Of a stretch of 64,000 nt of DNA, positions 16,717 through 31,657 are shown piece after piece. The stretch lies in assembly GCA_965644295.1 (NCBI GenBank), contig CBFFRP010000028.1, positions 124,001 to 188,000 on the forward strand, read 5' to 3'. The stretch's first letter is position 1. Each line of letters begins with the position of its first letter. Below the pieces are notes generated by a model that saw only the letters and a program-made list of their open reading frames with translations, ran no database searches and was not told the origin of the DNA. Origin of the DNA: Paraphysomonas bandaiensis. Lineage: Eukaryota; Protista; Chrysophyceae. Position numbers and translations under genes: made by a program.

Positions 16717-18055
16717 TTATCTATATCGATCAGTTCTGTCATATCTATAGTCTCTGCTGCCATCTCGATAACTACGTCTGTAATCCTTTTCTCGAGATCG
16801 ACTCCTTCTGTGTCGCCGTTCTGAATAGCCGTGTCGCCTCTCACCGCGCATTATTAATTCATCATCTGAAGTTCTCACCAATCTCATTTCCTCCGCTCGT
16901 TGTAGGAGAGCAGTAATTGTATCTTCCTTGTCATTATCCCCACCCACTTCCGTCAATTCGCACCACCGTCGTAGCATATCTTTCCTTTCCTCCCAGTCCA
17001 ATTTCCCTCTTACTTTCCGTAGGAACAGGCAACCTTCTTTCACAGCAACATTCAGTACCTCTGCATCCAACGTCGAAAACGTCAAAGGCGATTTAGCATC
17101 ATCTAGTGTCCAGTTGCAGTACGTAACTCTTCTTCTTGATACATAGCTTTCCTGTAGACCCTCTGTATCCGTTTCCGAATCTGAAATCGCACGCAGAGCA
17201 CCCAAGAATGTGGGAACTACCATCTCATCACTTGCGCGGACACGCATGAACGGCTTAAACAGGCGTTCTTCCCCAATATTCTCCAGTAGTCCCACTAGCC
17301 ATTCTGCATGAATCCGAGAGAGCAGTACCCACTGATCCGCTTTCAGCACACTAGTATACGGAAAACACTGATACAACGGCTTAAACTGTAACTGCAAAGA
17401 GTATCCATTGTTTGGTTTAGCTTTCCAGTTGATCCAGCTCTTACTATCGTCCGAAACTGCCCGAAGAGTTTCCTCCAATGATCGGATCGGCAGACAAGTT
17501 TCGGACACAAAGCACATCGTCGATACAGTAGGACAAGAGAGAGCCTGTAAACTCATTATACCATCACAATAAGAGTCCTATACATACCGTTTGAGCGAGT
17601 CGCACCATGACTTTAGAAAGCTCCACTGACCCCCACTCGGGACATAAACAAAAGTCGACCAAACGCTCACGTACCCATGGACTGAGCACCCGCTCGGGGT
17701 GCTTCGCATGAATCCATATATGAACTTTATCAGAACTTTCCTTGCTTGCATTTTCAATCCACGTTCGCCATATTATTTCATGCGGCAGTTCGTCTATGAT
17801 GATGAAGAGCAGTCCGATACCTGTGAAGCTGTCACTCCCCAACCTTAAACCATCCTTGAAGTGCTCATTCCTGATATAAAGTCACGTATATTTATACCAC
17901 ACAACCATATAGTACCAGAATGATGTAATGGACTCCATCAATGGGCTTACTCTCTGCGGACTGGATGTATCGGGAGGTGTGTGAGAGGTACGAGGGGGCT
18001 GGGAACGGTCATGAGACTTGTACTGGTCTTTCAACCTCTGGAGAGCTGATGACAT
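16717..18055 (-). CDS. Core-2/I-branching (Branch/GT14-like, DUF266-type) glycosyltransferase-like protein with an Arg/Ser-rich tail
   Basis: Introns 17871-17915 and 17545-17587. Motifs IGLLF..LPHEIIW, IHAK, WGSVEL, SETCLPI, KADQWVLLSR, DE..VPT, TYCNW and LFLRK. Confidence 0.78.
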
Positions 18056-24061: not shown

Positions 24062-25399
24062 CATGTCGCTTTGTATCAATCACCTTATAAGTAGTTGCAT
24101 TCTTGTTGATAGATAGTGCTTGTGAAGTTAACGACTGTGTGTGTTTTGGCAAGTGTTTGCAGTTTTGTATGTTTAAATTATTCAGTTCGTAGTTGTAATA
24201 ACTGCGTTTTAAGTACAATCAGCGCATGAATATTAAATTAGATAGAAACTAATTTATGCATTTTTGCCACTTCTAATCAGTGATGAATACTCGTACTGCT
24301 CATGATTGAGGACTGATAAAAACTGGTACATAAGAATGTCTGATCATTACTACATGAGAACTAGTTTTACATCTATAGACTAACTAATAACTGGACTTGC
24401 TATATACTACTAGTGGTGGGACGACCGTCTCGGGACTGCTTAAGCATCGCTGCGAGCACCATGGTGCAACCGTCCCTTTTAGTGAGGTTAGTCGGGGGGT
24501 ATACCTTAGGGCAATGTGTCTGGCGGACCTGTGCCACGGATTATGTGAGGAGTGGATGGGGCGAGATGTAGATGAGAGTGTAAGTCGGTGGTGGAAATGG
24601 TGCTGGTTGACGAGGTGGGGTTTCGGCCACAAGTAAAGATGAGTTGTTTCCGGAGTGGTTGCGCTTGCCTCTGTCGGGTTCGGACTCTTGTAGATGATAG
24701 AAGTGGTTGCCGCCTGGAGTATTTTTGGTGTCGGGGAAGTATCCTGGGACTGGTGTTGTTGTGAGTGTGTCGGTGTCGTGACCGGTGATAGAAACTGGTA
24801 TAGATATATATGTGATATACTGCTTTAGCCGTTCTTACTGAACTTCTACGGAAGTGGGTAAAGCAAAAGCGTAGTGCACTATCAATCTAATACATGAAAA
24901 TCATCGACCTATTCGTCGGGTAATATGATGTATGAATAATATATACTTCGAATCTGAAACCTAATCAAATAGATTACCCAAAACAGTAGTAAAGAGATAG
25001 TGGTAAATATTATATATATTATTCTCAACTTAGTTTTATTTGGTTGTCTAAGAAGTCTAGATAAGGACAAGAAATATTTTAATTGAGAGGTCATGCATAG
25101 TGGTGTCTGGCAGGTTGAATTACAATGGCTATTTGTTGCCCCAATTTCAACAGTTGACAATGAGTCGATATGTACCCGTGGTAATGTACAGAAAAGGGAC
25201 AATGATTGTATATCTATTTTTAGGGAGACCCATTCATCACTTCTAATGACACACAGAAAAATGAGAAAATTATCCCTTTGTCCGGCGAAGTCGGTTCTTA
25301 TTTAGGAAATATTTATCCATTATTAAACATATCACAACAAGATACTGTTACTCAGTATCTTAGAACTCGTGTTTAGAACAAGATATGGCCTGAGAATAC

Positions 25400-27135
25400 C
25401 TATATTGTAAAGTTGTCACTTTTATAAAGCCACTTTCGAAGTACCACATCTACGCTATCACATGAAAGGGGTTCATAATGTCGAGGCAGTTCATTAATTG
25501 CTATGTTGATGTGAGCACACATGGTAAGCAATATCTCTGGAACAACTTCCAAAACTCGGGAATGAATGTCATCACGAACGAGAGAAGAATAGGAGCACTG
25601 TGCAGAGTAGCTCAAATGCTGATAAAGTGAGAGCTCAACAGCAGCCTTGGATTCATTGAAAGTGCCAATGCATTCAAATGGCTTCTTCCCACCCTTATCA
25701 GCTCCAATAAGCGCAAGAAATATTTCTCTGAGTTCTTTCTTTTCCATCAAATTTTCTCCAAAAATTCCCCAGACTGAAGGCGGTGGAAGGAAAGCAGACA
25801 TGATAAGGTAGACAAACACACATTTCTCACATTTAGCGCACCATCGTGTATAGCCCACTGGATCGTTGCATGATATAAACACATTGTGAAGTTGTTGCAA
25901 TCTTGGTGCCGTGCAAAATATTCTTGCCACCTTATTGTTGATATAACTAGCCATATAGCCAAATGTCGAGTATACTCACCTCTAAGTCCCACATGTTTTC
26001 CAGCGGAGAGCGTACAGTAATACCACCACACACATACTTGCGTACATACTCATTTGCGGCCTGTACAAACCTCGACGACTTGTCATACTGGTGATTCACC
26101 TAAAACGCGCAGTCAATTGCGGTCATTTGACGGCATATACGATAACTTACTTCCACACCCTCATATGTCACTCCATTTCCGAAATCAGCAGACTTTTCGT
26201 TACCCAGAAGCACTTCTTTGTGACCGGTCAGTACTCCCACCTGCTGTACAATTACCACACCAACGACGAAAAATAACACTACTGCACCAGGACGGCATCG
26301 AATAGAACTAGGGCCGCCCAAGGATGTCCACATGGTTGCAAGTACGACTTCGATGTGCGCCGCAGATCCTCATATCCAAAACTATGCCGCACTGACAACA
26401 GATGCATCAACAACTGGCTACATAGCCGATAATCTTACCTGTGTGATATTTACTTCCAGCTACACGAGATATATGGTGTAGGCGCCAGTTTTGCTGGAAC
26501 TCTGTTTGTCCATCGGAAACGTAAAAGAGACTCGGGCGCTTGCCGGAACTTAAACTGAGGTGCCAGGTCACAAGACTATCCTTGCCACCTGCACATCTAA
26601 TTTACATGATTCACACTGCAAGTGATATGTATTTACCTCCGATTGGAACCAATACATCTTCGACCTGCGCATGGTCCATTGGCAAGGCTAGAAGCATATC
26701 GTCCTTGTGTGAGTCAGTCCCAGACTCTGACCACTCGATAACTGGAGCCTCGGCATTGTTGCAATAAAGATACTCTAACAGCACATTAGAGTACAGTTGT
26801 TGCCAGAAAGGAAGCACATCAGACGTGCGGCGGCTGATATTTCTATTGATGATTATCCGACGGCAGCCGAACCCCATCCAGTACCAGGGCAACACACACA
26901 TGCCTATACACCACACCGCATGGTGCATGTCGTCAGGGAGATCTCTGTCGATAGTCAGAACCGATTCAATGGATGTTCTATTGCAATAACTGAAGCAGAA
27001 AGTGATTTCTGTCTGCTGCTTGCTCTCATCGCGATGTATTTTAATATCTGTGAAATAGAAGGCCTCATGAGGATCTTTCTCGAAGAGACTGTTAATGTGA
27101 AAACACTCCTCATCCTCCGCATCTATCTCAACCAT
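25400..27135 (-). CDS. murL: MurL-like PP-loop ATP-dependent epimerase homolog (UDP-MurNAc-L-Ala-L-Glu epimerase family), about 497 aa, 6 exons
   Basis: Exons 27135-26637, 26588-26439, 26391-26288, 26240-26151, 26099-25980 and 25930-25400 splice in frame (1494 nt). Motifs in order: VLVPIGGGKDSLV, GHP, GNEKSADFGN, VNHQYDKS, SCN..WCAKCEKCVFVYL, IFGENL, KKPFECIGT. Confidence 0.8.
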
Positions 27136-27507
27136 AGTTAGATGAGGTGTAGTTGATATGGGGGGGTGTATGGTGCTATGGGGGGTGATGGTGTGGGTAC
27201 ATACATGTACACTGCACTGCACTGCACTGCGAGCGATCTGAGAGGCTGTAATCTTTCTTCGACTTCTTTCTTGCTTCTATTTTGTATCTCAATAGCGTAC
27301 TACTGCAATAGTAGACAAGTACGATTGGTGTAGACAAGTATAATGTACTGCTATACTTGTACCTCACGACGACATATGGAGCATATCCAAGTAGTATCGT
27401 ACTATCATCACTGGGCAGTGTGGTCTTAATGTATCATACCATACATACATGTCGCTTATAAGATCATACTCCTCTTCTTAATACCAGCGATACTTAAATC
27501 CCTTCTC

Positions 27508-29067
27508 ATGGCAACCCTTAAATACCATAAACCAGGCGAGTTAACAGTGATATCGATTCCTCAGTTCGATACAGAGCACTTTCCCTCATGCCCTAAAATA
27601 AACTATAGGAAACTACTGTCATCTCTGTTACCTCCCACTGACAGTGATGCTCCCGCTAAACCCGAATCAAGTAATACAGACTCCATCCCTTCAGGTGCTG
27701 AACCAGATCTAGTGAATGGAGTCAGTCCCGTGAGTAAGGCACGCGGTAAGCACTGTAATATAGTGGAGAGGCTGGAGAAGAAATACTTCGGGTCTGTGAC
27801 CGCAGAATCGGAAGAGAGTGACAGCATGTCTAGTGGGAATAATGTACCATCGGGTAAAGATATGAAGAAGAGGAAATTGAAATCATCCGCTCTAGACGAT
27901 TACGATTTAAATGACTCTTTCATTGACGATTCAGAGACTATAATTGCTGCCGAAAAGCGAATGAAGGTTAAGCGTACCAAAACGAAGCATGATGGATTTT
28001 TTGTGTCGTCCGGAGAACTGGAAGTCGTTTATAATAGTGAAGAAGTAGGTGGACCAGCGCCTGTAAAGTCCTGGGATCCACCGGAGGGATTAGTGGAAGC
28101 ACTTCAAGTGTTTAGAGCACAGGTACGGGAGCACTGTGGGCTAGATGAACACGAAGACCACCAGAAAATTCCACAAATTAAATACTTTCCTCGTGCACTC
28201 GACGAACATTTGTCTAAGGTAGATATTGTTGCTGCTGACGCGAGAATGGGGTCCGTTAGAAAGAACTCCCCGTATTTAGCAGCTTTGCGAGAGGCATTGG
28301 GGTCAGGCATATCTGATGGTGCACTCAAAACAGCGGTGCTCCGAATAAGGGCTCACAGAGCGGCTGTGGAGAGACATCTTCAACTCATGCAGCGTATTGA
28401 GGAGGTAGGCACCACCATTCGAAATAAAATAGTCGCTATGGAAACCGATGCAACTGCGGACTCAGCTCGTTACAGCGTAAAGTGGGATACATCGCTACGG
28501 GGTGATGTGTGTTCCGTAGAAGAGCTCTGTATGGATTGGGTGGCCGCTGAAAATGATCATAGAAGCCGTCTGCGGGCCTCGGACAAGAAGGAGATGTCCG
28601 AATCAGAAGTATGTTCTTTCTCAAACGATAATGTTTAACCTGTGCCATTGCCCGCAGACAATACAACTAAACGGAAATCGCGAACTCACGAAAGTACTGA
28701 AAAAAGTATCGGCAATAGCATTTGCTGCACCTTATTCCGATGACAATGTTGAGAAGGGTGGGCTTTCTGGTCTAAGAAAGGCTCTGACTACAGAAAAGGG
28801 GTAATGCGCTGAGCTAGTCGGTATTGAATTATTCACTTAATGCTATGATCATATAGGAGACGGAAAAGGAATAGTGTATCTGTAGCAAAGGAACGGAGCA
28901 AATCGTCTACGCAACCGCCTACACAACCGTCTACGCAACCGCCTACACAACCGTCTACGCAACCGCCTACGCAACCGTCTGAGGAACTAACGGTGACCAC
29001 TGAGCTGAATGTGGTTTCCGCTGTTGCACCTGGAGATGGTTCGCTTTCAACTTCAACAGATGGCTAA
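27508..29067 (+). CDS. HPC2/ubinuclein-like HIRA complex subunit
   Basis: NIVERLEKKY plus the HRD motif YDLNDSFIDDSE ... GFFVSSGELE. Introns 28609-28657 and 28801-28856. Confidence 0.82.
28904..28980 (+). repeat. Coding 12-bp repeat (STQP/PTQP) in the last exon of the HPC2-like gene
   Basis: Alternating TCTACGCAACCG and CCTAC(A/G)CAACCG units, about 6 copies. Confidence 0.9.
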
Positions 29068-30967: not shown

Positions 30968-31657
30968 CATACATACATACATACATTCATACATACATAC
31001 ATACATACATACATTCATACATACATACATACATACATACATACATACATACATACATACATACATACATACATACATACATACATACATACATACATAC
31101 ATACATACATACATACATACATACATACATACATACATACATACATACATACATACATACATACATACATACATACATACATACATACATACATACATAC
31201 ATACATACATACATACATACATACATACATACATACATACATACATACATACATACATACATACATACATACATACATACATACATACATACATACATAC
31301 ATACATACATACATACATACATACATACATACATACATACATACATACATACATACATACATACATACATACATACATACATACATACATACATACATAC
31401 ATACATACATACATACATACATACATACATACATACATACATACATACATACATACATACATACATACATACATACATACATACATACATACATACATAC
31501 ATACATACATACATACATACATACATACATACATGCATACATACATACATACATACATACATACATACATACATACATACATACATACATACATACATAC
31601 ATACATACATACATACATACATACATACATACATACATACATACATACATACATACA
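30968..31657. repeat. (CATA)n microsatellite, about 690 bp
   Basis: Near-perfect array between divergent starts at about 30910 (-) and about 31770 (+). Confidence 0.99.

Follow-up and report, generated by a model that had tools for sequence, protein, structure and literature searches.

An expressed, intron-bearing MurL-like protein from a chrysophyte-like protist and its place in a distinct eukaryote-type clade

The only role known for MurL is that of one half of an alternative route by which bacteria obtain the D-Glu of peptidoglycan, and its mechanism is still unsolved. The bacterial family is large: species-representative genomes contain more than 585 loci, and a murD-type gene lies directly downstream of murL, on the same strand, in 71 of the 80 bacterial loci that we fetched; three of these downstream ligases were scanned against TIGR01087 (murD), and all of them scored above its cut-off. 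In addition, MurL and a MurD-type ligase are naturally fused into a single chain in some bacterial proteins (P0120, P0139, P0140 and P0144, of 795-942 amino acids (aa)) and in ESM Atlas clusters, which indicates that the MurL and ligase functions are tightly coupled in bacteria. MurL activity requires ATP and Mg2+ and yields AMP, and adenylation of the alpha-carboxylate of Glu has been proposed (PMC5808125, PMC8788868). Here we describe a MurL-like gene on the minus strand of a 64,000-nucleotide (nt) stretch of protist DNA, called the window in what follows, in whose coordinates all positions are given. The original prediction for this stretch had named the gene an intron-bearing eukaryotic homolog of MurL. 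In our judgment it is likely to be an expressed, functional nuclear gene for a cytosolic enzyme that joins a MurL_N domain to a PP-loop domain of QueC fold, that belongs to a distinct eukaryote-type clade from which MurD2 and the murein context have been lost, and that acts on a carboxylate substrate outside murein metabolism.

The 497-aa product of the gene is a real MurL homolog. All of the motifs first read from the sequence are present in it, namely PIGGGKDS (residues 164-171), GNEKSADFGN (264-273), VNHQYDKS (282-289), SCN...WCAKCEKC (341-358) and KKPFECIGT (403-411). A hidden Markov model (HMM; profile length 459) that we built from 66 bacterial MurLs with a murD gene next door gave a single match to the protein, at 233 bits (E 2.4e-73), spanning profile positions 13-407 and protein residues 22-429, and 200 shuffled versions of the protein reached 2 bits at most. 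The NCBIfam model NF041275 (MurL_Xanthmoales) also matched exon 6 (E 5.7e-19, 67.9 bits, profile positions 298-391 of 447), and a HMMER search with the same exon returned 1,484 relatives. The closest full-length relative, P0004, is about 40% identical to the window protein and aligns in one piece with residues 9-468 of the spliced product (E 4e-125). By precomputed annotation, the closest relatives carry PF26299 (MurL_N) and PF26298 (MurL_epimerase_C); a Pfam scan of the window exons gave no match at E <=1 in a Pfam copy that lacks both of these families. The HMM match and a structural match of exon 1 (below) place both MurL domains, in order, in the window protein. Indeed, in an alignment of 122 sequences with 39 invariant or near-invariant columns, the window protein is identical at 37 and conservatively replaced at the other two (E to D319 and V to I409), and 90% or more of the aligned sequences have the GGGKDS variant of the PP-loop. 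The HMM score, the NF041275 match and the retention of these conserved residues thus sustain the identification as a eukaryotic MurL homolog. The N-terminus is acidic, as had been noted, and to judge from the sequence it holds no obvious targeting peptide.

The gene model was rebuilt from the window sequence by joining GT and AG sites. It runs on the minus strand from 27135 to 25400 and comprises six exons and five GT-AG introns of 47-51 nt, with one stop codon, which is terminal. This way of joining allows several open models of 481-499 aa, among which the 497-aa model has the strongest donors. For RNA evidence, public runs were searched and contigs of four runs were mapped onto positions 25200-27400: X1 and X2 are culture runs of one organism, X3 is a marine polyA metatranscriptome, and X11 is a DNA-like run. 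The features of the gene, including the minimum extents of its untranslated regions (UTRs), are as follows.

27136-27193, minus strand: 5' UTR (minimum extent); transcript contigs X1 and X2 reach 27182 and 27193
26637-27135, minus strand: exon 1, with the start codon (27135-27133), the MurL_N-like domain and the first half of the PP-loop (PIGG)
26589-26636, minus strand: intron 1, 48 nt, GT..AG; joint found in X1, X2 and X3 contigs and absent from the DNA run X11
26439-26588, minus strand: exon 2, with the remainder of the PP-loop (GKDS) and the eukaryote-clade insertion (E196, W201, R202)
26392-26438, minus strand: intron 2, 47 nt; joint found in X1 and X2 contigs
26288-26391, minus strand: exon 3, with the CGHPWAAL motif
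26241-26287, minus strand: intron 3, 47 nt; joint 26237>26285, cut +3, found in X1, X2 and X3
26151-26240, minus strand: exon 4, with the GNEKSADFGN motif
26100-26150, minus strand: intron 4, 51 nt; joint found in X1, X2 and X3
25980-26099, minus strand: exon 5, with the VNHQYDKS motif
25931-25979, minus strand: intron 5, 49 nt; joint found in X1, X2 and X3
25400-25930, minus strand: exon 6, with the four-Cys cluster (25820-25873), KKPFECIGT (25661-25687), the C-terminal helices and the stop codon (25402-25400)
25283-25399, minus strand: 3' UTR (minimum extent); the X1 transcript contig starts at 25283

In the transcript contigs of both X1 and X2, all five joints fall at the exact predicted bases. 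The X3 contigs contain four of the five, with zero mismatches, the joint at 26392-26438 lying outside X3 coverage, and the X11 contig covers the whole region unspliced. The transcript extends from about 25283 to about 27193. These RNA joints fix the 497-aa model, including the choice between the two adjacent AG acceptors of intron 3. The rebuilt model and the transcript joints together bear out the six exons, five short GT-AG introns and protein of about 497 aa that had been proposed, and the spliced transcript that was to be looked for is present in the culture runs and in marine polyA RNA. Intron 1 does lie inside the PP-loop, as had been claimed, where it interrupts the codon of a glycine. 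Exon junctions sit in gap-free blocks of the alignment to uninterrupted homologs. Five strain differences separate the coding sequence of the window from the X1, X2 and X11 contigs, two of them non-synonymous (25563 and 26695; H444P and M147I) and three synonymous (26333, 26686 and 26710), and X3 is identical to the window.

To place the protein among known folds, we made a full-length AlphaFold2 (AF2) model for P0004 as a proxy (predicted local distance difference test (pLDDT) 91.7), and the exon-1 domain of the window protein was modelled itself (pLDDT 84). In Foldseek, the P0004 model best matches QueC (2pg3 and 3bl5; probability 1.00, template modelling (TM) score by target 0.64-0.73), with further structural matches to QatC, Cap9 and TtuA. 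A family profile searched against the PDB, in which no solved MurL structure was found, returned PP-loop enzymes exclusively: TtuA (3vrh) at E 3.8e-5 across the loop and, more weakly, GMP synthase (E 0.02), NAD synthetase (NadE; E 0.05) and Cap9. The exon-1 model finds its best ESM Atlas matches in bacterial MurL_N clusters (TM 0.61-0.66), and against the PDB it gave just background-level matches to RNase-H-like and actin-like folds (Z <=7.2), with no functional lead. The catalytic domain is therefore predicted, from these models, to have a QueC-like PP-loop fold, a resemblance that is one of fold alone. Membership in the PP-loop ATP pyrophosphatase superfamily is supported by the SGGxDS-type loop, in its GGGKDS variant, which follows the first strand of a Rossmann-like domain. 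No window exon matched the QueC Pfam family (PF06508) at E <=1, and the MurL-like relatives scored 16.8 bits or less against its cut-off of 22, their weak matches lying over the Cys-cluster region. The MurL-like protein has in common with QueC, QatC and Cap9 the catalytic fold, the PP-loop and, presumably, the position of the four-Cys cluster, but it is only 11-21% identical to them in sequence and carries an additional MurL_N domain of about 165 aa. QueC presumably binds zinc at the place of the C-x9-C-x2-C-x2-C cluster of the MurL-like protein, and by analogy the cluster is probably a zinc site. The caution that QueC or another PP-loop family might prove the best match was not borne out: MurL is the best profile family, and QueC is its distant structural parent.

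Phylogeny places the window protein outside the bacterial MurL clade. A 101-row tree groups all 11 named eukaryote rows (the window protein, Phytophthora, Nothophytophthora, Aphanomyces, Symbiodinium, Balamuthia and three EukProt entries) with 26 metagenomic rows in a single clade (SH-aLRT 100), which stands apart from the 63 bacterial rows on a stem of 0.86 substitutions per site. The same split was recovered in a 58-row tree (ultrafast bootstrap (UFBoot)/SH-aLRT 100/100), in which the clade is made up of 25 eukaryote-type rows and one long-branch bacterial row, and in which the window protein lies inside a 10-row sub-clade (100/100). This sub-clade is chrysophyte-like, with P0004, P0010 and the EukProt entries P0085/P0165. 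On the clade contigs that we inspected, neighbouring genes are of eukaryote type and include a BTA1 fusion, cyclophilin, WD40, translin, tetraspanin, Kelch and TMEM18; the BTA1 proteins linked to the nearest MurL-like relatives, which share 70-71% identity with the two BTA1 copies of the present genome, have their named relatives in Ochromonadaceae and Mallomonas. The clade also has residues of its own, such as D287 and W84, each of which replaces a Ser found in 98% of bacterial rows, and A242, where 81% of bacterial rows have Ser. The insertion that contains E196, W201 and R202 is specific to the clade, and a bacterial motif around residues 219-238 has been lost from it.

The closest named proteins are the eukaryotic MurL-like entries of Phytophthora spp., Aphanomyces, Nothophytophthora, Symbiodinium natans ('murL'), Balamuthia mandrillaris and EukProt, which share both the clade and the domain pair with the window protein. 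These database entries are 32-41% identical to the window protein, which belongs to another sub-clade than they do and whose nearest relative is about 40-46% identical. Phytophthora gene models P0172, P0175 and P0196 fuse the MurL-like protein with a NEK kinase or IFT57 domain, and probably reflect adjacent genes that were run together and not real fusions. The original prediction had taken the gene to be domesticated after horizontal or endosymbiotic acquisition, a claim that finds no footing in the tree, which reveals neither a donor nor a direction of transfer.

What the window protein has in common with bacterial MurL is considerable. The two-domain architecture and length class are alike, the motifs GGGKDS, GHP, NExSA, NHQ..K, SCN..WCxxCxKC and KPFEC.G...E are all present, and the ATP-to-AMP adenylation chemistry is presumed to be common to both (PMC5808125). 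The differences are of several kinds: spliceosomal introns, the separate long-stem clade, the change of S to D in NHQY(S/D)KS, the replacement of SYWK by PWYW in the N domain, the clade insertion, and a score far under the equivalog cut-off. This cut-off is 700 bits for NF041275, and both exon 6 alone and the closest full-length relatives (94-137 bits) lie below it, as do, however, bacterial MurLs from outside the Xanthomonadales (about 255-261 bits). The gene also differs from bacterial murL in that a murD neighbour, a murD gene elsewhere in the genome and a murein pathway were not found. The genome searches, which work at the level of single exons, covered the six frames of a 669-contig draft assembly. 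Across its 62.5 Mb there was no match for murD (TIGR01087), for a MurD2-like protein, for MurB_C or for Transpeptidase, and no MurD-like match was obtained by tblastn in the window or on two homolog contigs, in agreement with the earlier statement that the window holds no other mur gene. The expectation of a host that makes no murein, for which a genome-wide search for mur genes had been suggested, agrees with these searches, which otherwise gave one borderline Mur_ligase_M match and, for Ddl (Dala_Dala_lig_C), just borderline ATP-grasp matches. Murein-recycling genes were likewise not found in the genome, where AnmK gave no match and the MurQ search a weak SIS-domain match alone, and the suggestion that the enzyme handles prey peptidoglycan is accordingly not upheld. 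Judged from sequence comparison, then, the window protein does not appear to be an orthologue of the murein epimerase, and the original identification with MurL needs that qualification, given the score below the equivalog cut-off, the separate clade and a MurD2 partner that was not found.

These data are best read as pointing to an enzyme that uses ATP to adenylate a carboxylate, that is probably an epimerase and that has been put to new use on a substrate outside murein metabolism. Because the MurL-specific residues are kept and the N domain and an inner segment are changed, the same chemistry would be expected on another substrate that is not murein. In such a mechanism, ATP would be bound by the GGGKDS loop, and the substrate carboxylate would be adenylated with release of pyrophosphate. 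E266, the N283-H284-Q285-K288 group and C408 would next invert or otherwise transform the activated alpha-carbon, after which the adenylate would be hydrolysed and AMP released. Activation would make the alpha-proton acidic, and for an N-acylated residue an oxazolone-type intermediate would be chemically plausible. The substrate would be a non-murein carboxylate, most simply, perhaps, a terminal residue in an N-acyl amino acid or a small peptide.

Several points weigh against this reading. We infer its chemistry and substrate class by analogy with bacterial MurL, and the zinc site and the roles of the catalytic residues are proposed from conservation and from comparison with QueC. The full-length structure is that of the 40%-identical proxy P0004 and not of the window protein. 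Since searches were made exon by exon on a draft assembly, the absences of murD and of the other genes mean 'not found'. The complete set of MurL motifs is kept, and the substrate could for that reason still be murein-like. In addition, the eukaryote status of most metagenomic clade members is based on the neighbours of a few contigs, and one bacterial sequence, P0061, falls within the eukaryote clade. This sequence (L085:414-1754) sits on a long branch and comes from a bacterial-looking contig, on which its neighbours are a Big_7 domain and a carbamoyl-phosphate synthase and murD is not adjacent. It represents either a relative of the donor lineage or a long-branch artefact.

The genomic setting of the gene is eukaryotic. 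The MurL-like gene is head-to-head with a gene whose product has the HUN domain of HPC2, just as had been described, and about 315 bp separate the 5' end of the MurL-like transcript (27193) from the start of the neighbouring open reading frame (ORF; 27508).

27508-28638, plus strand: divergent neighbour gene with a HUN (HPC2/ubinuclein) domain, Pfam PF08729, E 3.3e-12

The GC content of the MurL-like gene resembles that of its surroundings, and the locus is single-copy in the genome. The shared intergenic region contains a (TGCAC)n pentanucleotide run at 27204-27227, just upstream of the MurL-like transcript 5' end. Elsewhere in the window, the interval 31000-31499 is of low complexity, with a GC content of 0.25 and a GC skew of -1.0 (the plus strand has no G), and several long ORFs overlap there on both strands; the ORF at 16717-17556 on the minus strand encodes a Core-2/I-branching glycosyltransferase domain (E 6e-7). 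As for the host, about eight silicon-transporter (SIT) genes occur in the genome (contigs C348, C406, C398, C150, C405, C298 and C149), and no match for light-harvesting complex (LHC) proteins or PsbO was obtained in its 62.5 Mb. As LHC and PsbO were not found, the host looks non-photosynthetic, and a role of the gene in plastid peptidoglycan was dropped on this ground; the host is probably a colourless, silica-scaled marine protist.

How far other explanations compete with re-use on a non-murein substrate can be judged from the same data. The main rival to epimerisation is an enzyme that shares the adenylation step and follows it with another second step, such as a QueC- or asparagine-synthetase-like amidation, a ligation, or a conjugation of carboxylate and amine like that of QatC and Cap9. 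Indeed, the nearest solved folds (QueC, QatC and Cap9) all couple adenylation to the formation of a C-N bond, the weak QueC Pfam matches of the relatives fall over the Cys cluster, and the long stem (0.86) and clade-specific residues are compatible with a change of function. However, NHQ..K, KPFEC and GHP, which are shared with bacterial MurL and not obviously with QueC, are all conserved, and we argue from this that the MurL-specific second step has been kept; nor was any TGT- or QatB-type partner noticed beside the gene in the window or on the homolog contigs inspected. We regard this alternative as unlikely, although it deserves to be kept in mind. Considerably less probable, in our view, is an enzyme that acts in a cryptic murein-like pathway or on prey muropeptides, for example by inter-converting the stereochemistry of Glu for salvage. 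All catalytic-looking MurL residues are kept, the host looks like a colourless bacterivore (it has silicon transporters, and LHC and PsbO were not found), and GenBank pipelines auto-name some of the eukaryotic homologs MurL, but murD, a MurD2-like protein, MurB, the transpeptidase and AnmK were not found in the genome, MurQ gave only its weak SIS-domain match, and the scores, of 68-129 bits, fall far under the 700-bit cut-off. The separate clade, with altered N-domain residues and an altered 219-238 segment that is conserved in bacteria, also speaks against such a role, as does the presence of the clade in organisms such as oomycetes and Symbiodinium, for which feeding on bacteria is not known.

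It is tempting to speculate that the eukaryote-type clade is an unrecognised enzyme class, one that would use carboxylate adenylation of the MurL/QueC type to rearrange or epimerise a eukaryote-specific metabolite such as the head group of a betaine lipid. On two chrysophyte-like metagenome contigs (L002:3040-7195 and L087:1725-5559), the MurL-like gene lies directly upstream of BTA1 on the same strand, where BTA1 encodes a betaine-lipid synthase of about 689 aa that fuses DUF3419 to a methyltransferase, and the remaining neighbours differ between the two contigs. Chrysophytes make both diacylglyceryltrimethylhomoserine (DGTS) and diacylglyceryl hydroxymethyltrimethyl-beta-alanine (DGTA), the latter being made also by the diatom Phaeodactylum and the brown algae Fucus and Ascophyllum (PMC9892843), and the enzyme for the step from DGTS to DGTA is unknown (PMC10685587). 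Against this link, both BTA1 copies in the present genome are on other contigs than the MurL-like gene, four further BTA1 loci have no MurL-like neighbour, and no diatom or brown-alga homolog was seen among the named matches; the idea of such a class is improbable on present evidence, and the betaine-lipid link is a low-probability lead. The two BTA1-like genes of this genome (C91:47956-49017 and C141:116990-118051) are intronless, with open frames of 699 and 692 aa; their proteins are each 70.9% identical to the BTA1 of L002, and the genes may be paralogues or haplotigs. Very little likelihood attaches to a gene that was transferred long ago and is now decaying, still transcribed but without a function. 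The ancestral partner and pathway were not found, and evolution has been fast (the MurL-like proteins of the two BTA1-linked contigs, P0004 and P0163, are about 39% identical, the BTA1 proteins beside them 70%), but the reading frame is intact over six exons, splicing is precise, and at all 39 conserved positions checked the residue is kept or replaced conservatively. Moreover, the clade persists in oomycetes, a dinoflagellate, an amoeba and chrysophyte-like lineages, and the transcript occurs in environmental polyA RNA. A bacterial contaminant or mis-assembled bacterial fragment might be suspected in a family that is so overwhelmingly bacterial, but five GT-AG introns of spliceosomal type have been spliced out in polyA RNA, the gene is paired head-to-head with the HUN-domain gene in 64 kb of eukaryotic sequence, its GC content matches its surroundings, and it is present in a single genome copy. 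As the introns are spliced at the exact bases in RNA, we consider contamination excluded for practical purposes; the spliced RNA and the eukaryotic neighbour confirm the earlier view that it was unlikely.

Homologs from Phytophthora, Symbiodinium and Balamuthia were already in GenBank, and others in EukProt, some of them auto-named MurL. In the literature, we found nothing on eukaryotic MurL homologs beyond one sentence in a 2018 review (PMC5808125). What is new here is a splice-verified MurL-like member in a chrysophyte-like heterotroph, together with evidence that the eukaryotic MurL-like proteins constitute one distinct clade from which MurD2 and the murein context have been lost.

An intact, expressed and intron-bearing MurL in organisms without murein points to a second job for the MurL scaffold, in a clade that spans stramenopiles, a dinoflagellate and an amoeba. 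The core that is conserved in both clades narrows down which residues carry out the chemistry of MurL. It will be interesting to search for the substrate, as its discovery could bring to light an ATP-driven epimerisation or rearrangement that is new in the metabolism of protists, and the eukaryotic MurL-like enzyme is possibly a source of metabolites that contain D-amino acids.

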